A DNA stretch of 64,000 nt from Oopsacas minuta (Eukaryota > Animalia > Porifera). The stretch is taken from NCBI GenBank assembly GCA_024704765.1, contig JAKMXF010000298.1:372001-436000 (forward strand). Reading direction: 5' to 3'. The first letter of the stretch is position 1. Each line of letters begins with the position of its first letter. The notes beneath the pieces were generated by a model. It saw nothing but the letters and a program-made list of their open reading frames with translations. It searched no databases and was not told the origin of the DNA. Shown here one piece after another: positions 4,182-59,354 of this stretch. Both the position numbers and the translations under genes were made by a program.

Positions 4182-7100
4182 TTACACACTTTCAATAGAA
4201 GAATTATCAGCTAGTAAAATAGGTTGTAACCGCATTGGTTTACTGCTTTCTAATTTAACACTCCTCCCACAGAATACAGTAGTACTAAGATTATCCATAC
4301 AAGTTCCATGGTAAATCTCACTGGCTACAAAATCTCTCTCAGTGCGACTGGCTGATATTTTAGCACGTTGACGTTCTTTGGCATCACGTAGTGCTATATA
4401 GTTAGAAGTTCTCTCTAGATACTCGTCGAATTCTGCTTGTTTCATCTGTTCCATTAGATGATCACTGTGTATTGTTTGGTAGTAATACTGTTCTTCTTGT
4501 AAAGCGTCTTGATTACGAATCTCGAACAGATCTGTTTGCATTTTCAATATCTAATTGAGTTAGAACATATTACATCATATTACCTCATATTTATCTAAGG
4601 TATAAAGTATACCCTCTTTAATATGCAAGGGGCCGTAGAAATCATATCCAGAGTTTCGAATTAATGAAAGTCCACATCTAATTATTTGTATGTAAATATC
4701 AAAATCATATATACATACATTATACGTAAATCAGCTTAATGTAATTTTGCTTTTTCAGAACTTGTTATAACTCAAGTTCTGTCCATATACTTCCTACTGT
4801 GTAATCCATCATTTTCGGCGAAATTTTGTAGCAACAATCCAACAAAAATCATATGCAGTGCAACCTCTATAATTGGGGAACCTGGGGTAATTTTGGTCCA
4901 CCTTCATTCCTTCCCATAGATTCGAACCTCTATATGTGGTGAGTGGGGAATGAACATACTTTAGAGGAAGTTATGCTCCACACCATTGAAATTTACCTCT
5001 ATATGTAGGGGAATTCACGAAAATTTTTCTTGAATTTTGTAGTAAATTTGAAAAAAACCGTATTTATCGCTATGATGAATTGAATTTTGGGTTTCTCAGA
5101 AGAAAATTTCTTCCAAATTTGTATATTCAACCAACAACCTTAAGGCATATAATAATAATAAAATATCATTGGGAAAACAGTCTATTTCTGTGGTAGGATA
5201 TTTTTCAATACAAACCTGTTCACACTTAATCTTGTGTATACTGAGTATTTCTGCTATACCTTCCCTATCATACGCTACAGGTCTGGTACCTTCACTCTCC
5301 AGCTCACTAGCTATCTCACGCCAAATTTCCCCAGTCTTAATATCCATATACCTCTCTATTAACACAATAGTAGCTCTATCCTCTACAGATATACTATCAG
5401 GCACAGACCGGAAGTCTAATCTACTACATAATGAGTAAATCTTAGCTCGCATATTATCTGCTACATCCATGACACATAGACTGTGTAGAGGTTGTTCAGG
5501 CTGTTCTCGCATTTCTCGTTGTAGACCTGTTGTTAATGCCTCGTTAACATCTGCTATAATAATGCCATCCTTCCGAGCAACATTAAGAGCTGATTCCTCT
5601 CTACGCCAGAGCTCAGCTAGTAACGACCAAATCCCTAAAGAACATACCAATCAATAATACTTTGATATATTTCTCAATCTTTTAAATATTTTTTCAAATG
5701 TCATCTAAATACTAATTCTACAGTCAACTCGCGTTATATCGAAGCTCAAGAGACCGCGACTAAGTCTGAAATTGTACAAATGTGTTCCCAAACCGTAAAA
5801 GTAACATACTTTTATCTGTTATATCGAAGAAAATTATCGCGGTCCCTTCAGGTTTGATAAAACGGGAGTTCAGTGTATTAAGCCAATTAACCATGCTAAA
5901 CCTATTAAATATTCAAATGCATTACTCACCAACAGCAGTGTCATTTCTCCCTAAACTCTTGCTAGACAGCTGTAACGTATCTGACATAGATTCAGATCCT
6001 CTCTGGAGTGTATCAATCTTCTGCTTACCTCCCTCCCTAGCCTGCCATGCTTGTAGATGTGGAATACATCTAGCATCATCAGATAGATCAACTAATACTC
6101 CTAGAATAACACTCTTCATAGATATAGGATGTGTTAATAGACAGTCTACTAATACAAATACTCCTTCTTGCATTAGAAATAATTCCTCATTAGCACTACA
6201 TCCTACTACACATGTCCATATAGCATCTAGTGCGTGTAGAAACAACTTATGGTGTCCGAGACCAGCTGAGAATAGGCTGTCTGATATTAATAAGTAATTA
6301 GTGAGAACTTGAATACCTCCTAACAATGTACAGAATTCGTATGTAATAAAGTATGAAATTAATATAGGAAATGGTTGATAATACCAATATACTGATACGT
6401 GTATTGATGAAAATCACATAAATACAAGAATGTACAAGTACTTACCGATATTCCCTAGCAGTTCTTTAGCTCTATCATCAGCTTCACATAACAAACTAAT
6501 CAGCAATAGAGTATCACTCATGGTATCAATATCTAAACCATCTGTACTAGTGGGATCCATAGCATCTAGGAAGGATATCAAGAGAGATAAAACACCAAGG
6601 TCCAATAGTTCTTGATTTAACTGCTCATGTTGGTGACTAGATACGTTAAGTAAGGCTCTGAGACAGAGGAATAACTGAGCTCTCTTGCTACCTCTACTAC
6701 CAGGCTGTGATAATATAGATGTACCTATTGGCAGGTCAGAATTATAAATCATTCATAAATACAGCAGTATTCACCTATTACCAAATTGATTTGATAGAAT
6801 TCCATAGTGGTTGTTTTTCACAATAATACAATGTACAAACAGCTGACAGTTCCTCTAATAGTAAGACAAATAAGTCTGCAAATTATAGATTTATTGCAAA
6901 ATTTCGCAGAATCGCGGTGACGTACTGACATCACACATCGTTACATGGTGCAACAATTTTGCCTAGAAAATTCATACACGATGCAACTGTTGCATCGTGG
7001 TTGGTGGGCTTTAGAATCCTAGCGACAAGTATACATCCGATAAACATAGCTGCCATTGATTAACACCTTACCATAGCTCATATGATCATCCTCACACAGA

Positions 7101-9590
7101 CACCAGTCTAGCATACCCAGTAGTCTAGCATTACCCTGACATGCATGGTATTGTTCTGGTAGTTTACCAGCTAGATGTGATAACACAGATAGAGATTGTA
7201 ATTGTATTTCTTCCCACTGCTCTGAGCTCCATGACAACCGGTGTACAGACCTACTGGTCCCAGAAGATGCCGGTTGTACCGGTGTGACGTAGTAGAGAAG
7301 AGAGGGTAAGAGCGGTAGATGTGAGAGTAAGAGTATAGCAGCTGGTATATCGAGAAATGAGTGTAATATGTTTAGAAGCAGTTTCTTAAATTCAAAATCC
7401 TCATGTGAGTTATCTGGTATGAATCTAGCTGCACTTGTAGGCTGTGAAAAGTATAAATAGAAAATTTACAGACAATTTGAGTCCATTTCCACCAAACTAC
7501 CAGTTAGAACTAAACCTGAAGGACAGTGGTTCCCAACATTTTTGCCTATGACCCCCCTGCTGTCTTCCGTAGACCACCAAGGAATCCATGGTTGGGAATC
7601 GCTGTTCTGGGATAAATTTGTACCATAACCAATCATTTTCAAAATAGAAATTTCAAATTTTCAAAATGTACCCAATTTCAATTCTAACTGTTAGATTTCG
7701 AAAGTTCACATACACATCCTGACGTCACACATAGCTGCACTAATAATAATCTTGAACACTACTTTAATATTAATTCTTACCTGTTCATGAATTTCAGGAC
7801 TACTAGATAACATTATTAGTGTTTGTAACAAGCCAGTTTCAATATAAGGAGAGTTAGGACAATGCTGTACATGTAGAGATAGTATCACCAACAAATCATT
7901 ACGTAACTCCCGTGTACTGATACTGAGAGTGTGTGGAGTAGGAGCGCCAATGGATACATCGTAGTTGAGAAGTTTTAACAAACATCGATGGAGAGAGTCT
8001 ACACATTCCATTGAAGAGAGTTGTGACTGAAGAAATAGCATAAATAATCATGCAATAACAGATTTCCTTGAATGATACCACGAGATGAGCTAATTTTAAT
8101 GTCCTCCCTCCCCGTGGGGCGTAGACAAATAGCTATCGACTAATATGGTAACTATGAAAAAGTATCGTGGTTAGTGAATGCTATGGAAATTAATTTGGTT
8201 CCTAATAAGATTTTGTATGTGATTATATATTTGTGCTGCATTGAAATGAATGAAACAATTCGTTTACCATTCAAGGAAATTAATTATTCTATTTACTTGT
8301 ATTTCATGTCTAGATCCATTCTCTAGTAGATTCCATAATATCTCCATAGCCTGATTAAACTCTACAGCAGTACCAGGACCTTGATTACCTCTTCCCCAGT
8401 CTATTAGCTCCAGCATCAATAGAGGGAGTCTCCCTCCTGAACCAGCTGACAGGATACTCTCTGTACCAGATACAGATCCTGATAATATACTCAGTACTTC
8501 TAACACACAGGAAAACAGGTGAGAGGTTGAGGATAGATCTTCTTCAAGTAGCAAGCCAATCTACAAGAATAATTAAACAATAGTTCAAGTTCCGACCGTT
8601 GGATAATTGAATAATTCTGGCATCCATGAAAATATTCAGGGTAACCTGTGTATGAAGCTTGCTTACTGACAATGGTATCTCAGCTGATATAAATCTAGGA
8701 TCGCGAAAATTCACCAAAACTTACCGGATACTATCTGTATATGTAAACGCGTAAAAAATAAAATGCTAATTTTTAAGTTTTTCTGTATTTTCCTTATCTG
8801 GTTATCTGATTATCTGAATTCTACTATACACAATTAATTACTTGTTTAGCAATGTGACTTCTCTCCACTATTTCCCTGCGTACAGATCTCTTCAGTTTCC
8901 TCTGAGGAGGTTTACTATCCAGATGATGATCAGCTGATTCAGATAAGCTATCTTCTAATGTGTATATTTCATGTATTGTGTTACAAACACTGATACATAA
9001 ATCTGGGTATGATAGGTCCAGTAACTTCCCCATTGACTATAAACATAACAATTGTATAGAAGGAAATTGATAACACTTTATTTGCTGAGATAAATATTGA
9101 AATTAAATAATACAGTATAACCTTAATGAACAGGGTACAAGGAACGCCGAAAAATGCTACCCCGTTTCCGTCTGTGGAGGTTCATTTGTGTGGGACTAGG
9201 AATTCGCTCTATTATTTTCACTTCGTTTCCAGATGTTGCCCGTTTCCACTGCCCCCAGTTATGGCGGTTACACTGTAGTAAATACGTGTATGTATTTACC
9301 TGTACGCATTTAGCTGCATGTTGAGTATAATTCTTTTCGTCAGAAGCTTTTTCCTTCAAAAACGGAATAGCACACAATTTTGTAAGTTCTATTAACATTT
9401 CATTCATTAATGGCCAAGAATCAAGTATTTCATAACAAGCTGGAATCAGCTGTGCTAATTCCGAAAGATCACTCATTAGAAATCCCTTAGTATTCTGTTC
9501 TATTACACGATTAATAGCGTGTTCATGTCTATCTGACACATCACTGATGTGAGGATCTGTAAGTAACTTCACTGCACTACCAACACTCAT
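4182..9590 (-). CDS. CFAP69: Cilia- and flagella-associated protein 69, multi-exon (ORF pieces 9123-9590, 8824-9033, 8264-8554, 7706-8041, 7019-7440, 6414-6752, 5922-6326, 5096-5650, 4182-4547)
   Basis: Collinear exon ORFs with CFAP69-like motifs: KLLTDP...PFLKEKASDE (N-terminus), DNMRAKIYSL...RYMDIKTGEIWREI, and C-terminal EYLERTSN...STTVFCGRSVKLES. Flanked by GT/AG sites. Confidence 0.85.
5721..5875. mobile_element. pogo/Tigger-like MITE family B (cagtcaactc...gagttgactg), in a CFAP69 intron
   Basis: TA-flanked TIRs. Internal aagtctgaaattgtacaaat...cccaaaccgtaaaagtaacatac is shared with the copy at 11299-11464 and, more loosely, with copies or fragments at 1-100, ~20880-20960, ~22073-22222, ~32455-32523, ~32908-33096, 33940-34097, 52604-52697. 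Confidence 0.8.
7524..7604. mobile_element. Short hAT (Charlie/MER20-like) MITE remnant
   Basis: TIRs cagtggttcccaac / gttgggaatcgctg. No clear TSD. Confidence 0.55.
9113..9275. mobile_element. TA-flanked MITE family D (cagtgtaacctc...gaggttacactg) in CFAP69 intron 1
   Basis: Related copies at 25330-25530, 27494-27591 and ~29620-29708 share gaaaaatgctaccccgtttc. Confidence 0.7.
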
Positions 9591-10349: not shown

Positions 10350-10612
10350 TGTATTATAATTTAGTTGCTTTTTCACGAAATTTATTATATTAAAGATCAA
10401 AAATGATTTTAACATAAAGTGGAGGATCCAAACTGTATTTCCAAATGATGAATATTCTGCGAATTTCGTCACAAGCATATACTGTATTAACTATCCATGG
10501 ATGGGTAATCTACTAAACAAATATCAACGCATACAGTACAAAAAATGAATAAATATAAATAAGATAGAACTAAAAATATTCGATTTAACATCTCTAACAA
10601 ATCCCAGAAAAA

Positions 10613-11197
10613 TTATTCCACCTTTATTTGTCCATCAATGAAAGCTAGGCTAATTGAATATATAGCTATTAATGGTACAAATATCCAAATCAGATTAGGA
10701 AATAGATAGAATGTGAACAGAGTAATCGCATCATTATGTCCTGTGTGTTTAAATCCACCAACAACTTCCATCATAAAGTAGAGCATAGTTTTAGAAAGTG
10801 TCATAGAACTTGCTATTAGAGCAAGTATTGAAGCTCCTTTGTAATTACGTGTACAGAGAGTTAGCAAAGAAATAATATTCAAAACGACTTCTACCAAATT
10901 CATTAGGGCTACAGAATAAATGAAATCATCATTGAGATCATCATACAATGTATCAACTTCTATATAAATACCGTAGCTAGCTTTCCAAATAGGATTGGAG
11001 ATAGAATGGGGTCTGTTCAATACAAATCCTAAATCCCAGAGAGTGATAATACTCGTAAAAATTAGCCATGTATAGATAAATTGCGGTATTTTTGCACTTG
11101 ATGGGAGGTATTTGGAAATTAAGTGTGAGATGATCATAACAGAGCCTAAGATTACACCCATCAGGATTGAGCCAAATATCAGTTCTTCTTTTCCCAT
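10613..11197 (-). CDS. EXPERA-domain (emopamil-binding protein-like) multi-pass membrane protein, 194 aa
   Basis: About five hydrophobic helices. Motifs WD-x-G-x-VL-x-RP, Y-x-EVD-x-x-Y, E-x-x-N/LVE and PNLIWIFVP are typical of the EXPERA family. Confidence 0.7.
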   Translation of the reverse strand: MGKEELIFGSILMGVILGSVMIISHLISKYLPSSAKIPQFIYTWLIFTSIITLWDLGFVLNRPHSISNPIWKASYGIYIEVDTLYDDLNDDFIYSVALMNLVEVVLNIISLLTLCTRNYKGASILALIASSMTLSKTMLYFMMEVVGGFKHTGHNDAITLFTFYLFPNLIWIFVPLIAIYSISLAFIDGQIKVE

Positions 11198-11298
11198 AAT
11201 ATAACTCGCTAATACCTAAATTCGCAATTAAATAAAGAGCTCAGCTCCAGGTAACTCGACTTCCATATAAGGAATAAATTGCAATATACGAGCAAGTA

Positions 11299-11464
11299 CA
11301 GTCAACTTCCGTTATATCAACACGGATATATCAAAATACCCTTATATCTAAGTCTGAAATTGGACAAATATGGTCCCAAGCCGTAAAAGTAACATACATT
11401 ACCCCAGTTATATCGAAGTAATTTATCCTGGTCACTTGAACTTCGATATAACGTGAGTTGACTG
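11299..11464. mobile_element. MITE family B copy between the EXPERA gene and DHPS
   Basis: TA|cagtcaacttccgttatatc ... gatataacgtgagttgactg|TA. Confidence 0.85.
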
Positions 11465-11602
11465 TACGTAGTATGAGAATAGAATTTCTCCAATTAATAT
11501 ATTACACACTAATCTACACTAAATCGAATATTCTAAGTTCTATTCGCATGCAAAAAATAAAATTATCTAAATTGTTTCCTAAACCTTTTCCTACACAATT
11601 GA

Positions 11603-53905: not shown

Positions 53906-54346
53906 ACTGAATATTTCGTGTTATTATGTGGTAGCTAATAATAGAAAGATGAAGTAATCTAACAAATCATTTCATAAAGTGTTCGAATCGAAATTAATAA
54001 AATGCAAGGAATAACAACTTTTGATTTGTTGACAATTTGAAATGGATTTAATTAGAAAATAATAATACAATAAATATAAGATATCTCAACGAAATTGTGA
54101 ATGTGAATAATACACACAGGTCATCACTTGAAAGCCTTGGAAATTGGCAGGCTCTCAACCTGGAAATTTTAAATAATCAGATCCGTGAAAATCTCACAAC
54201 TCGATCGGGAGAAGTACGAATTAGTATTAGTTTGTATGAAATGACTATGGATTGTGGTAACTGGTAGGTGTGGGCCAGAAATTGTGAGCACACAACCGAT
54301 GGGTTGTGATATTATAGACGAGTTGAATGTACTATTGGGAAGAAAT

Positions 54347-54413
54347 AGATTCAAATAAGATCAAACAAATAATAACAATAAAGTTTCTATTATTTCCATC
54401 ATATAATGAACCA
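54347..54413 (-). promoter_or_regulatory. SECIS element of SelL copy 1
   Basis: Minus strand: tggttca-ttat-ATGA-t-ggaaataatag-AAA-ctttattg-ttattattt(g)tt-t-GAT-cttatt-tgaatct. Helix I ggttca/tgaatc, GA quartet, 11-bp helix II with one bulge, AAA 12 nt after ATGA. Confidence 0.88.
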
Positions 54414-54422
54414 ATATAAAAG

Positions 54423-55034
54423 TTATAATTTACTTTTGAGCTCAGTGTTGACTACATGAATCAGCTGATCAACAACTGGTCTATCATCAGGTCTCTCACA
54501 ACGATAAAGATAAACAATCCGTCCTTCTTTGTCAACAAGAGCATCTCCCCCTAATTGAGTTACTTCCTCATCACTACGCGGTTTTCGTATCGAGTGACCT
54601 TGAAGCGATTTCTGTAAATACCACCACAATGTCCACGCATGCCAACTCTTATATGTTGAATTAGCGAATCCAAACGCCTTATAAATAGACGTATTGTGAG
54701 TGATAAATAAGGGAAAATTAACGTTTGTGTATTTCAGCCAGTTTATCGCAGTCTCTCTGTCGTAAATAGCTAACAGGACAATATTAAGCTTATCTAGCAA
54801 ATCTTGAGAATTAGATAGCTCTTGTACATGTAGTTGTCATGGAAGTCAATTGGAATGTCTCAAGAAAACGAATAGAGTATGTTTTGAAAATTTTCCAATT
54901 TCGTCATGTCCTTTAGAAATGTCTAGTAAAGAAATAGAATTTCCATTCTGACAATCTGTGACGCGTATAGAGGGTTGTAAAGTGTCTCCAATGTTGAGAG
55001 GAGGGATCAGAGTGTCAGGATACTGTTCAGCCAT
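54423..55034 (-). CDS. SELENOL: Selenoprotein L-like (AhpC/TSA, Prx-like Trx fold) with two Sec residues (ULPU), single exon, 203 aa
   Basis: One continuous frame: LFVFLRHSN-TGA(54846-48)-CTT-CCA-TGA(54837-39)-QLHVQEL...QLGGDALVDKEG...ERPDDRP, ending at TAA. It joins the two ORF-track fragments 54846-55034 and 54423-54800. SECIS immediately downstream. Confidence 0.92.
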
Positions 55035-55709
55035 AAAATGACCAGAAATGATACTGAAAATTCTAGTTGGATGAATAAAAAGTTAATAATATTTAAAGAT
55101 TCAAGTCATTAATGAAGTGTTCCACCAAAATGTCATTTACATAAAACAAATAGAATTAAAAGGTATCAGGTAGTGACGTAGCTGTACCTGGACCCAGGCT
55201 TTATATTCGTGAAAATTGACGCGAAAGACAAATTCGGGAACGAAGAGACTAGACTGTATTTAATACCAATATTTCCCATAAATTCAATAATCATAGGAAG
55301 TTTGGCTAAAGCGCTTGTACTTTTAGTTGAATTCACCCTTGACAAATCTACGTTGAAAATAACATATGAAACGGCATTGGAGTGCAGCATTTCGAAAAAG
55401 ACACTCAAAATACATCATTCCAAAGTATAATATAATTTAAGGTCTGTTGAATTCTATTAGTTTAAAAGAATTCATGCAGTCATCTGGTATAAATTACAGT
55501 TTGAGCGAATTTGATAATCCTCACATGAAACCAGTTATGAATATCTTTCGCCTTTACACATCATAAAACATATCTCTCAGCGCATCAATATGAATATGGG
55601 ACTTTGCGTAATACCAAATATATATATATAAATACAAAATTTGATACTAATCATGAAAATATTATCCACCACATCGGGAAATATGATTTAACGAAACTTC
55701 ACATAATAA

Positions 55710-55900
55710 ATGGCAGAAGCTGAAAAGAAGTCTGCCACAAAGATAATGATAGGAGATAAAGCTCCCTTATCAAAGTTTCTCTGAGATTTTGAATTCGTCT
55801 CTCTTCCACAAATTTGTGCGAAGAATGACTCAAAGAAAACACTATTTGTGTTCTTACGTCATCATAAATGAGGCTTTTGATAAGAGTATATACTTGAGTT
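55710..55900 (+). pseudogene. 5'-only truncated SelL-like pseudogene retaining a UGFU motif
   Basis: MAEAEKKSATKIMIGDKAPLSKFL*...DSKKTLFVFLRHHK-TGA(55869)-GGC-TTT-TGA(55878)-TAA. Premature TGA at 55782 aligns with AGA in the paralog. A 9-nt deletion is present and homology is lost after ~55900. Upstream ~55435-55710 resembles ~56478-56754. Confidence 0.85.
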
Positions 55901-56753
55901 GGAAAGTATTTGTTTGTCCACTTTGTATTATAATGATAGGGGAAGATGATCTGCGTACATAATATAGGGACTAACATATCCTTCTGGTGACGATATAGGA
56001 AAAGTAAACAATTACATTAGGATTAGCGAGTATGCTGATTCCGATTTTCTTTCGAGTTAATCCTATGCAAATATATTTGTTGTTTCATGAATATAAAGTA
56101 AAATATAAAGTCCCATGCAAACACAAGTGTTCGCAAGTCGAGCAGCGCGAGAAAGCGAAGCGGCTCGTGTAGTAAGAAAATACGATGAAATTGGAATTTT
56201 AATATAAATAATTCACACAATATAGATATGGAAACTGAGCTGGACTAAACCGAAAGCAATTTCGAATAAAGAGACTGTTTTGAATAGTCCAATCCTGAAG
56301 GAAAATTCGAAATTGGCGAGTATTGTAAGAGCTGAAGTAAAGGTGACAGTTATAAATTTTGCTGGTGATTATTGGCCATAATTAGTAATTTTATGAAAAA
56401 ATTACCAAAATAATTATTAGTTATATAACTCGAACATACAGTGAATCTTGCAGAGTAACTACAGGAATAGAATTCAAGGTCTGGTGAAATCTATTAATTT
56501 GAAGATTATCATGCGTTTATCTGTTATAATCTACAGCTTTGTAAAGTATACAGAGGGGATTGGAAAATTCGCGTATAAACCAGTCAAGTATAGCTTTCAT
56601 CTTTATAAATCAAATAACACATCACATTAATATGAATAGGGACTTTGCTATAATACCGCATATACACGTATATAAAATATTAGAGTGTACACTTTTCATG
56701 AAAATATAATCTGGATATATCGATATACAATTTACCGAAATTCCACACAATAA

Positions 56754-57323
56754 ATGGCAGAAGCATATGAAAATAAGCCTACCTCTCGGATAATGATAGG
56801 AGACCAAGCTCCCTTATCAATGTATTTAAGAGAAATTGAAAACGGAGAACTTATCTCTATTCCACAAATTTGTGCAAAGGATAACTCCAAAAGCACTCTG
56901 TTTGTATTCTTACGTCATTTCAATTGTATGTTTAGCAGAGAACATATACGTGAGTTGGAAAATACTCCCGCAATACTAGACCAACTTAACGTAGTGATTG
57001 TCTCAAATTTCGAGAAAGATGCAATTAAAGAATGGAAGCAGAAAGTCAACACAACTCTACCCATGTATATGGACCCAGAATTAGACCTGTACAAAATAAT
57101 GGGCTTTTCAGAGACAGCAAATACGAAAGCTAAGACTTTTTTCAAGGCAATTATACTGTCAATGAAAACTCGTTCAATTCCACAGAGATCTGGGAGAGAT
57201 ACACCAGGTCATTTGGGTGGAAATATGATTGTGGACAAGGAAGGAAAGGTAACATATCTTTATAGAAGCGAGAGTCCTGACGATAGACCACTTCCTTATG
57301 ACATATTGAAATCGCTCAGATAA
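56754..57323 (+). CDS. SelL-like paralog without Sec: CxxS (CMFS) active site, 189 aa
   Basis: LFVFLRHFN-C(TGT 56925)-M-F-S(AGC 56934)-REH aligns with the UxxU of its neighbours. HLGGNMIVDKEG...RSESPDDRP. No in-frame TGA; stop is TAA. Confidence 0.92.
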   Translation: MAEAYENKPTSRIMIGDQAPLSMYLREIENGELISIPQICAKDNSKSTLFVFLRHFNCMFSREHIRELENTPAILDQLNVVIVSNFEKDAIKEWKQKVNTTLPMYMDPELDLYKIMGFSETANTKAKTFFKAIILSMKTRSIPQRSGRDTPGHLGGNMIVDKEGKVTYLYRSESPDDRPLPYDILKSLR

Positions 57324-57370
57324 TTCAAATTTGCTGATAAATCGGGAGGATGTAATGTAAGAATTGGTGA

Positions 57371-57434
57371 ACTCAATAGTGATGTGAATAATATAAACAT
57401 TTATTTATTGATATTATTTGCTGATTTGTAGAGT
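57371..57434 (+). promoter_or_regulatory. Retained (fossil) SECIS-like element with GUGA core, downstream of the Sec-free CMFS paralog
   Basis: actc-aata-GTGA-t-gtgaataatat-AAA-catttatttattg-atattatttgc-t-GAT-ttgta-gagt. Helix I actc/gagt, fully paired 11-bp helix II (WC/GU). Sequence visibly homologous to the SECIS at 57819-57883. Confidence 0.8.
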
Positions 57435-57818
57435 GAGACAATTAAATAAATTCTCTGAATTTTCCAATTATGCAAATTTCTTCAGCTGGGCTTTTCCGAA
57501 ACTTGTTTTAAACAGTCAATTCTGCAAAATTTGGAGGCTTGTATTCAGGAAATATGTCCCGAACAAAGAAAGGTCCCGACAACGGAATGTTATAGCCGCA
57601 ATTTAGGATATAATACATTCTGCATGTGTGACCAATTGTGTTTGGCTAGCTGAGATATACTATTATTGCTAGAGTACTGTTCAATTCAAAGTTTGAACAC
57701 ACTTAAGAATTATAAGGTCAATTCATAGAAATTAACGCAATTTAGAGAAAATTTCCTTTAATAACGTAACATCTAATAAAACGCACATAACAATTGAGAG
57801 AAGAAATAATAACTGGCT

Positions 57819-57883
57819 TGACTCTATAAATCAGTGAAGAATATCAATGATTTGTTTCTATACTTCACTTCATAGACGAGTCT
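57819..57883 (-). promoter_or_regulatory. SECIS element (form 2) of SelL copy 4
   Basis: Minus strand: agactc-gtct-ATGA-a-gtgaagtatag-AAA-caa(atca)ttg-atattcttcac-t-GAT-ttata-gagtca. Helix I gactc/gagtc, helix II, AAA bulge and apical mini-stem caa/ttg. Confidence 0.9.
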
Positions 57884-57926
57884 TACACAACTCTTATATC
57901 TAATCCCAATTCTAATCGAAATTCAA

Positions 57927-58503
57927 TTACTTGAGTGTTGATAATAAATTCACAACAAAGCTAATCGTTGGTCTATCATCTGGACTTTCGCTTCTGTGGA
58001 GATACAGAATCTTCCCTTCCTTGTTCGCGATCATATCCCCACCCAATTGAGTTGACAGGTTTCCAGGGTTAGATTGAAGTTCGCGACGTTTAAAAATCAA
58101 TCGAATACTTTTCAATACAGTTTTGACACCAATATTAGCTCTGGGGTGATAACCCAGTAATTTATAGGTTTCTGATTTCGCGTCAATATACATTGGGAGG
58201 TTACTATTTAAATGACGTAACCATCCCTTTGCTGCCTCTGGCTCGTAAAACGAGACAAGCACGATATTGAGTTGATCAACAATAGCTGGAGTACTGCTCA
58301 ACTCTTCTACGTGCTGTTGTCAGAAAGGTCAAACGAGATGACGTAAGAATACAAATAGTATTCTTAGAGTCATCCAACGCACAAATCTGTGAAATTGAGA
58401 TGTTTTCTCCGCTCTTCAAATCCATCATAGTAATAGCTGACGGGAGAATATCTCCTACGTTTATATTGGGGACTGAGTCAATCTTTGAATTGCCCTCAGC
58501 CAT
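57927..58503 (-). CDS. SELENOL: SelL-like selenoprotein with UPFU motif, interrupted by an apparent 2-nt deletion at ~58359 (pseudogene or assembly error)
   Basis: Frame 1 gives MAEGNSK...LDDSKN. After the shift: LFVFLRHLV-TGA(58329-31)-CCT-TTC-TGA(58320-22)-QQHVEELSSTPAIVDQLN...QLGGDMIANKEG...RSESPDDRP-TAA. Paralogs read AAG AAA ACA CTA TTT GTG; this copy reads AAG AAT A CTA TTT GTA. Confidence 0.8.
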
Positions 58504-59354
58504 CAGAAATAATAATTATACAAATCTATACAAACATACACATATTTATACTTAGTAGTATCAATTATGGGTCATTTAAGTTAGTAATTATATTTCAAGT
58601 CTACTCACTTATCAATTACGTATAGTATCTAACGTTCTACAGATTTATGCATATAGTTAAGTTGGTTTCGCATAATTGTGTCACTTTCGTTCTAGGAACG
58701 TGACACAATAAGATTGTCCAAATAATTAATCTATTTTAACACGCATTCGAGTGTTGTCTAGTGTATTTAACATGTGGTAAAGATGTAAGGCTTGCAAATT
58801 ACTTCATGGGCTACAAGTAAGTTGCCCCTCCGGGGTGCTCTACTTTAAGGGATAGGTTATTATGCGACAGTATACTATGAGCTAGGATATATTATACCCT
58901 GGGATAATTAAGCATCAGTACGAGTTGACTCATCAACAATCATAGATGTACAAGTTATCAAACCTCAAATTGGAAGATTATCCAAGATAAATCACAGATT
59001 CTCACGCTACGCATACTTTACTATTTCAATGTACATACACGGAAAATATTGTATATAACTTGGAATTCCACGTTTCATAATGCTGAAACATATAAGGCTA
59101 AAACTATATGTATAAACATTTCATAACTGTAAATTTATATCAGTTTTCGTACCAACGAAGTTCTATTGTACGAAATTTCTTATTATATACAATAAGTAAA
59201 CTCTTGTCAAAATATTCAGTGAACATAAAAGTTCGGCGAATGTTTTCCGGAGTTAGAGTACACTTTAATTAGGACGTAATACTCTATCTACCATATGGAA
59301 TTCACAAAGATTAACAACTATGATGTTACAACTAATTAGAATCCATAGAGCAGT

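Follow-up and report, generated by a model that had tools for sequence, protein, structure and literature searches.

Apparent selenocysteine loss and gene death in a probably old tandem cluster of short SelL-like genes of the glass sponge Oopsacas minuta

SelL, a protein of unknown function, is among the least understood selenoproteins, and the diselenide that it forms between two selenocysteines (Sec, written U) is unusual in chemical terms. In the hexactinellid sponge Oopsacas minuta, positions 54347-58503 of a 64-kb window (the whole stretch of DNA analysed here, from contig JAKMXF010000298.1 of assembly GCA_024704765.1, with a G+C content of ~34-35%) hold four SelL-type paralogs of the AhpC-TSA_2 family, here called c1 to c4, each intronless and lying on strands -,+,+,-. 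The locus raises the question of whether such an array is a local expansion whose copies stand at different stages of selenocysteine loss, as was originally predicted from the sequence, or a cluster with a longer history. Reading the region confirmed each descriptive statement of that prediction, namely four copies within 4.2 kb, their order of strands, and two inner motif residues that differ in every copy. The comparison with other genomes points to a different history from the one predicted: the locus is probably the form taken in O. minuta by an old tandem cluster of short-form SelL-like genes, kept in synteny, which glass-sponge relatives share and in which genes are born and die.

The features of the locus are collected in Table 1. 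The expectation that standard gene finders would annotate the region as short unrelated fragments is borne out by the deposited annotation, in which c3 is the sole called gene of the four. The Pfam profile AhpC-TSA_2 (PF13911) scores above its curated cut-off on c3 and, in the case of c1 and c4, on the C-terminal half.

Table 1 Features of the SelL-like locus (window coordinates) and the C-termini of c1-class genes in the comparison contigs (contig coordinates). SECIS, selenocysteine insertion sequence; R1, covariance model built from relatives only; ORF, open reading frame; PTS1, peroxisomal targeting signal type 1
Feature	Position	Strand	Description	Evidence
c1	54423..55034	-	Predicted intact two-Sec gene, ULPU, C-terminus -SKL	Translation; AhpC-TSA_2 8e-12; ULPU and -SKL/-SRL orthologs in L003-L007
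SECIS of c1	54347..54413	-	AUGA core	Rfam SECIS_1 20.4 bits; R1 40.9 bits, E 1e-6
c2	55429..55908	+	Truncated pseudogene: upstream region and first ~66 codons from ATG 55710	Likeness to c3; tree
Dispersed repeat	55909..56168		High-copy; takes the place of the remaining c2	Word depth; loose ends
c3	56754..57323	+	Intact Sec-free paralog, 189 aa, CMFS	ORF; Pfam; deposited annotation
SECIS of c3	57368..57437	+	GUGA core, both helices fully paired	R1 62.4 bits, E 1e-11
c4	57927..58503	-	UPFU gene with one 2-nt deletion near 58357	Frames; four-copy alignment; read contigs
SECIS of c4	57818..57884	-	AUGA core	Rfam SECIS_1 37.9 bits; R1 63.8 bits
c1-class C-termini	L003 8867-; L004 -5846; L005 -4517; L006 6761-; L007 -10207		PTS1-like end	

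To find relatives, we used an exhaustive HMMER search with c3, which gave 215 matches, while a word-indexed search with the same query returned c3 alone. Many of the top HMMER matches are proteins of 100-130 aa that start right after the motif, or, in one case, a 58-aa protein that stops right before it, the pattern left when gene callers break selenoprotein genes at their TGAs. Among Logan-derived proteins, some have WLPW or WPFW, the TGA having been read as Trp. Glass-sponge annotations systematically overlook SelL-like genes or break them at TGA codons. The loci used for comparison come from metagenome assemblies of the European Nucleotide Archive (L003-L007), with a 1-kb Logan contig (L008) in addition. 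Four of them (L003, L004, L006 and L007) share the neighbours found in the window, genes for WD40, PKC, SET and signal peptide peptidase proteins on one side, and L006 also has TTI1 and NHL on the opposite side; the short L005 contig has signal peptide peptidase alone beside its copies. Between the relatives and O. minuta, signal peptide peptidase shows 79-83% identity. Synteny is the sole ground on which we take L003-L007 for related glass sponges.

The same paralog classes recur in these contigs. The c1 class reads ULPU in six of six genomes, and the c3 class reads UFLU in L003, L004 and L007, with a separate UNPU paralog in L005 and L006. Genes of the c4 class encode UPFC in L003, L004 and L006 and twice in L007, but UIFC in L005; in the relatives, the motif stops are TGA throughout. 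In a tree that left out PRXL2A-C, the c1 genes form a clade, O. minuta c3 is sister to the c2 fragment (96/87) within the c3 clade (support 100/99), and the c4 clade (98/97) includes O. minuta c4, while c3 and c4 are joined with the c4-like genes of L005 and L006 at 100/98. By this tree, the paralog classes are older than the species split. The proposed local expansion does not survive this comparison, as the three paralog classes are syntenic in five other contigs and c2 alone is a duplicate specific to O. minuta. Turnover of the same kind as in O. minuta is found in L007 (6773-7546(+) and 8560-9361(-)), where c4 is triplicated. One of these copies reads SPFC (TGA to TCA, Ser for the first Sec) and is Sec-free, with the same SECIS as its sister, and the UFLU gene of this contig carries a nonsense mutation (TAA/TAG) within the conserved QLGG.

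Whether the TGAs are decoded as selenocysteine was approached through the reading frames, the SECIS elements and the selection acting downstream. When its TGAs are read through, c1 is one frame of 203 codons, in which TGA occupies codons 63 and 66 (54846-54848 and 54837-54839) and gives ULPU; c1 is the intact ULPU gene with a SECIS that was expected. This SECIS begins 9 nt past the TAA stop. c1 has neither an extended N-terminus nor an exon further upstream; its orthologs all begin at MAE.

The elements behind the genes lie ~10-50 nt past the stop and comprise N-UGA, an 11-bp helix, an AAA loop and UGAU. We searched both strands of the window with a covariance model (R1) built from 14 elements of the relatives, with no O. 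minuta sequence in it. Exactly three matches have an E value below 1e-5, and they follow c4, c3 and c1 in descending order of score (E from 4.5e-12 to 1.1e-6). A fourth match at 6862-6945(-), with 15 bits and an E value of ~1, has no SECIS fold and was rejected as chance. In the 14-element alignment, 86% of cells are paired, a share that drops to 32-68% once the 3' partner is slid. Both sides have changed in 8 of the 15 pairs, and the covariation score was reached by none of 500 shuffles. The UNPU paralog (L005 861-925(-), L006 8581-8645(+)) has a weak SECIS match of 16 bits, which begins at the TGA stop and is without a recognisable 5' UGA quartet, so that its SECIS is either unusual or situated elsewhere.

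Over the ~135 codons downstream of the TGAs, compared among L003, L004 and L007, where synonymous divergence (dS) is 0.37-0.55 and unsaturated, the ratio of nonsynonymous to synonymous substitution rates (omega) is 0.05-0.16 for c1, 0.15 for c3 and ~0.47 for c4. The UNPU paralog of L005 and L006 is conserved as well, with an omega of 0.19. Whole-gene omega is 0.10-0.25 with the O. minuta copies included, although synonymous sites are saturated between O. minuta and the relatives (dS >1.2), so that the O. minuta omega values are rough. A selenocysteine tRNA has been predicted in the O. minuta genome (PMC10280926). The proposal that the TGAs act as Sec codons is thus supported by their retention in orthologs, by purifying selection downstream of them and by covarying SECIS elements behind the genes. 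Each gene would consist of one exon with one SECIS behind it, through which both UGA codons are read as selenocysteine, and from these comparisons we infer Sec insertion at the two TGAs of c1, which would be the conserved functional member of the cluster.

In c4, the TGAs at 58329-31 and 58320-22 give UPFU. The gene falls into two parts in separate frames, of 48 codons on the N-terminal and 142 on the C-terminal side, and the four-copy alignment places a 2-nt deletion just ahead of LFVFLRH; the copy is therefore frameshifted with an intact SECIS, as had been foreseen, and this SECIS is the best of the window. For the state of the locus in reads we used four sequencing runs, X1-X3 from the assembly's own sample, and hence not independent of the assembly, and X5 from a second organism (organism B), which is ~95-97% identical at the locus. 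Contigs from X1 and X2 run through the deletion without a gap and show no alternative letters at it, so a long-read error is not the source of the frameshift. In organism B, the letters GT stand behind 58357, and with them c4 becomes a single frame of 192 codons whose internal stops are the two TGAs only. The lesion in the reference thus appears single and very young, as expected of a recent or polymorphic null allele. Within the c4 class, TGA at the second motif position occurs in O. minuta alone. The independent outgroup contig L008 also encodes UPFU, with a SECIS of 50.6 bits, which leaves the direction of the change between Sec and Cys ambiguous. The c4 class would be a faster-evolving one, Sec-Cys (UPFC) in relatives, and the copy of the reference, UPFU with the 2-nt deletion, would be a recent or polymorphic null allele.

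The c3 copy has lost selenocysteine at both motif positions. Its CMFS is encoded by TGT ATG TTT AGC (56925-56936) in a reading frame that stays open through 189 aa, and the SECIS behind it, which has a GUGA core and in which helix I and helix II are fully paired, is near-identical to the elements after the UFLU orthologs of L003 and L007, which have GUGA too. That c3 is intact and Sec-free with its SECIS retained is therefore as first described. The loss is real and derived, because the orthologs are UFLU and the dead twin c2 still reads UGFU. Since c2 has TGA at both positions, the loss in c3 would postdate the duplication that produced the pair. The common ancestor of c2 and c3 would have been a UxxU gene, duplicated in the O. 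minuta lineage. In c3, Sec1 would then have become Cys (TGA to TGT) and Sec2 Ser, probably through Cys, since TGA to AGC takes two changes and the simplest route is via TGC (Cys); the SECIS, still intact, would now be unneeded. In organism B, the c3 SECIS differs at five positions, two of which turn G.U of the reference into A-U pairs, and one of which changes the G at 57410, invariant in 13 of 13 aligned elements.

The neighbouring c2 is the truncated UGFU pseudogene that had been proposed. From its ATG, the frame first meets an additional TGA at codon 25 (55782-84) and then UGFU at codons 54-57 (55869-55880), with a TAA right behind the motif (55881-83). It is 71% identical to c3 over 510 nt (55429-55908 against 56466-56964), ~280 nt of which lie upstream of the gene, and this likeness stops exactly at 55908. 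From 55909 to 56168, word depth rises to 5,700-9,300, against 50-130 in the flanks (X1-X3), and many loose ends fall at 55909 and 56168. This ~260-nt element, with a depth in the thousands in all four runs, that of organism B included, is a dispersed repeat of very high copy number, one copy of which lies in the window. Past the repeat, no c3-like DNA or protein was found, and the relatives-only model detected no SECIS after c2. As the likeness ends at the repeat, with nothing c3-like beyond it and no detectable SECIS, c2 is a 5' stump. In this pseudogene the two TGAs of the motif would have been kept while the extra TGA and the TAA arose, and the 3' two-thirds together with the SECIS would have been lost at the insertion of the repeat. 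A candidate SECIS remnant at ~56340-56420, suggested by pattern and fold, scored below 8 bits with the clade model and was rejected. The X5 run has no contig over the c2-unique parts (55468-55905 and 56198-56489), and c2 may be absent from organism B or merely unassembled at 5x depth. The gap in X5 measures ~1.1 kb, near the size of the c2/c3 duplication unit. As a further observation, UGFU of c2 (55710-55880) and CMFS of c3 look like the CGFS of monothiol glutaredoxins, perhaps by coincidence.

Taken as stages of selenocysteine loss, the copies fit in part. The description holds for c3, which is a true loss, whereas c2 (truncated at a repeat) and c4 (with its 2-nt deletion) are cases of gene death.

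Several observations weigh against this account of the locus. At relaxed search thresholds, the general Rfam model SECIS_1 (RF00031; gathering threshold 35 bits) passes c4 only, with a weaker match for c1 below the threshold and none for c3, and a search of the whole window with Rfam at gathering thresholds and default filters gave no SECIS match. The same model also fails the relatives' elements behind conserved Sec genes. It seems weak for AT-rich sponge SECIS elements with GUGA or UUGA cores, and in the sponge Amphimedon a GUGA core is present in 12 of 21 SECIS elements (PMC3473315). Judged by covariance models, which the original prediction had named as a check, the SECIS elements therefore hold with the relatives-only model, which finds those of c1, c3 and c4, and fall short with Rfam, whose gathering threshold is reached by c4 alone. 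Searches for sequencing runs that contain the locus gave four from the assembly's sample and one from a relative. The runs that cover the locus resemble DNA, with even depth over genes and spacers, so that transcription and Sec insertion are deduced here from sequence comparison. Depth over 57467-58650, the part that contains c4, is 9-17, as against 50-130 at 54300-57500 (X1-X3), a 4-9x reduction. Finally, c3 is perhaps relaxing, with a rough omega of ~0.66 to organism B, from small numbers among listed differences, and deep nodes of the tree leave the orthology of sponge and fish SelL open, the N-terminal domain being missing in the sponge copies.

The low depth at c4 bears on the possibility that c4 is no pseudogene in the species as a whole, the deletion being a rare allele or an artefact of haplotype choice and most O. 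minuta carrying an intact UPFU or UPFC gene. This we consider doubtful, though it has several points in its favour: the lesion is the only one in an otherwise open frame, the SECIS is the best in the window, long-term omega of O. minuta c4 against its orthologs (0.12-0.25) is not above that of the other copies, organism B (~96-97% identical) retains both bases, and, in X1-X3, depth over the reference version of 57467-58558 is down to between 1/4 and 1/9 of that of its neighbours. Against it, the X1 and X2 contigs are gapless at the site, with no alternative letters, and a search of X1-X3 for a second allele across 57467-58650 at ≥90% likeness found none, these runs being from the same sample as the assembly. 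In X5, depth is even over the locus. A structural polymorphism may span c4, which is possible because each O. minuta library was made from one different adult and adults brood embryos (PMC10280926).

A similar doubt applies to c3, which might be sliding into a pseudogene, its frame still open and constraint already gone. The differences listed between c3 and organism B in the coding sequence comprise at least 11 nonsynonymous and at least 5 synonymous changes, with G152D among the former and none listed at CMFS, and these are the source of the omega of ~0.66; in addition, organism B alters the SECIS-invariant G. We find this unlikely, as the 189 codons of c3 are intact, omega against the UFLU orthologs is 0.12-0.19, the c3 branch is comparable in length to those of the orthologs, and the counts from organism B are small and come from listed differences only.

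The original prediction also saw in the motifs a diversification of redox chemistry. In its adaptive form, this would make the copies a redox series, with diselenide, selenenylsulfide and monothiol members for different substrates or for selenium scarcity, and c3 as a selenium-independent backup. The classes do hold distinct motifs across species under purifying selection (ULPU in 6 of 6, UFLU in three and UPFC in six), and Sec-free copies arose twice, as CMFS in c3 and as SPFC in L007. These Sec-free copies are, however, lineage-specific and stand beside plain pseudogenes, the recent listed changes of c3 run at least 11 nonsynonymous to at least 5 synonymous, the SPFC copy is without the attacking residue, and neutral turnover fits equally well; we regard the adaptive series as quite unlikely. 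The reading of all TGAs as plain stops, with every copy but c3 a dead fragment and no selenocysteine used, can be dismissed as very improbable: gene callers do break every copy at the TGAs and Rfam passes one SECIS, but pairs of TGAs stand at the same codons in six contigs, omega past them is as low as 0.05-0.16, a covarying SECIS follows each gene, the family is already known as a selenoprotein family, and a tRNA-Sec is predicted in the genome (PMC10280926).

The birth and death of genes in an old cluster thus remains the reading that we prefer. A bolder reading, which we put forward tentatively and with considerable reserve, is that glass sponges keep a three-class redox series, of diselenide (ULPU and UFLU/UNPU) and selenenylsulfide (UPFC) members, in which Sec and Cys replace each other, either way, at the resolving position. 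The UPFU of c4 would then be a possible gain of Sec from Cys through an existing SECIS, and the ULPU member with its -SKL or -SRL end a peroxisome-targeted diselenide oxidoreductase. For the cluster we infer diselenide and selenenylsulfide chemistry, and for c1 a peroxisomal location. The locus and its five syntenic relatives make a compact comparison set of UxxU, UxxC, SxxC and CxxS proteins, with or without an intact SECIS, which permits diselenide, selenenylsulfide and thiol chemistry to be compared in one scaffold and offers a timing of SECIS decay after the loss of Sec.

The C-terminus of c1 (window 54423-54431) has the PTS1 pattern (S/A/C)-(K/R/H)-(L/M). This end is present in the c1 class of all six genomes, as -SKL in O. 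minuta, L004, L005 and L006 and as -SRL in L003 and L007, while the residues that precede it vary among the c1-class proteins. The conservation suggests a PTS1-like signal and a putative peroxisomal selenoprotein; c1 would probably be imported into peroxisomes, and would form an intramolecular diselenide. To our knowledge no peroxisomal selenoprotein has been described, and a limited literature search surfaced none. The conserved -SKL on the ULPU member is a concrete clue to the site of action of SelL. An invertebrate long form (P0020) likewise ends in -SKL.

With respect to family membership, c1-c4 are filed as SelL-like members of a known family, on the basis of their predicted proteins. The assignment to SelL and AhpC-TSA_2 made at the outset is supported by fish proteins named selenoprotein L (P0042, P0189, P0197 and P0237, by NCBI/UniRef names), which are in the same HMMER family as c3 and are matched by it at 2.7e-7. 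UxxU stands at the CxxC position in c1, where the gene is intact, and in the broken genes c2 and c4, but not in c3 (CMFS), and one SECIS each lies behind c1, c3 and c4. The Atlas structure model of c3 has a predicted template-modelling score (pTM) of 0.80, with template-modelling (TM) scores of 0.77-0.82 to AhpC-TSA_2 and prostamide/prostaglandin F (PGF) synthase clusters, and its CMFS aligns on the CVVC of prostamide/PGF synthase. The passages on SelL in PMC3316567 and PMC2397514, which cite Shchedrina et al. 2007, describe a peroxiredoxin-like protein of aquatic organisms only, in which one SECIS serves two Sec residues, spaced as UxxU, that form a diselenide. The sponge copies share with fish and invertebrate SelL the AhpC-TSA_2 thioredoxin fold, UxxU at the CxxC position, a single SECIS and an aquatic host.

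They nevertheless depart from plain SelL, which had been assumed, in that the ~150-aa N-terminal extension of the fish and invertebrate long forms is missing. The sponge copies have ~190-205 aa, with the MAE start ~55-60 codons before the motif, as against 300-335 aa for fish and long forms; the use of the extension as a family criterion is our assumption. The flanks of the motif are alike, with an LRH...H pattern in common: LLRHFA-[UxxU]-R.H of gar and of the long forms of invertebrates corresponds to FLRHSN-ULPU-QLH in c1. Fish SelL, of ~300 aa, frequently occurs in Cys forms (CLLC). Whereas Amphimedon, Trichoplax, Nematostella, Capitella and amphioxus are reported to have one SelL each (PMC3473315), the sponge cluster has at least three tandem paralog classes, one of which is UxxC, and its c1 ends in -SKL or -SRL.

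Three other systems invite comparison. PRXL2/prostamide/PGF synthase (PDB 9us9) has PF13911, the fold and a CxxC aligned to CMFS in common with the sponge proteins, but PRXL2 and its kin are Cys proteins, resemble the sponge proteins only weakly in sequence (E 0.04) and give no basis for assigning a function. The AphC-like selenoproteins of Amphimedon queenslandica (PMC3473315) are likewise tandem thioredoxin-fold genes of a sponge, with homologous SECIS elements and frequent GUGA cores; they belong to another family and have a single Sec and several exons. The Sec-to-Cys conversions of vertebrate SelU and GPx6 (PMC2397514, PMC3316567) resemble c3 as lineage-specific replacements in a conserved gene, while c3 differs from them in keeping an intact SECIS, in having its dead, unconverted twin c2 next to it, and in the change of the second Sec to Ser.

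One further feature was seen in the comparison contigs: between c3 and c4, L003 has a long minisatellite (10495-11470) of YRNFINRIDP repeats, which is called as a gene of 170-180 aa.

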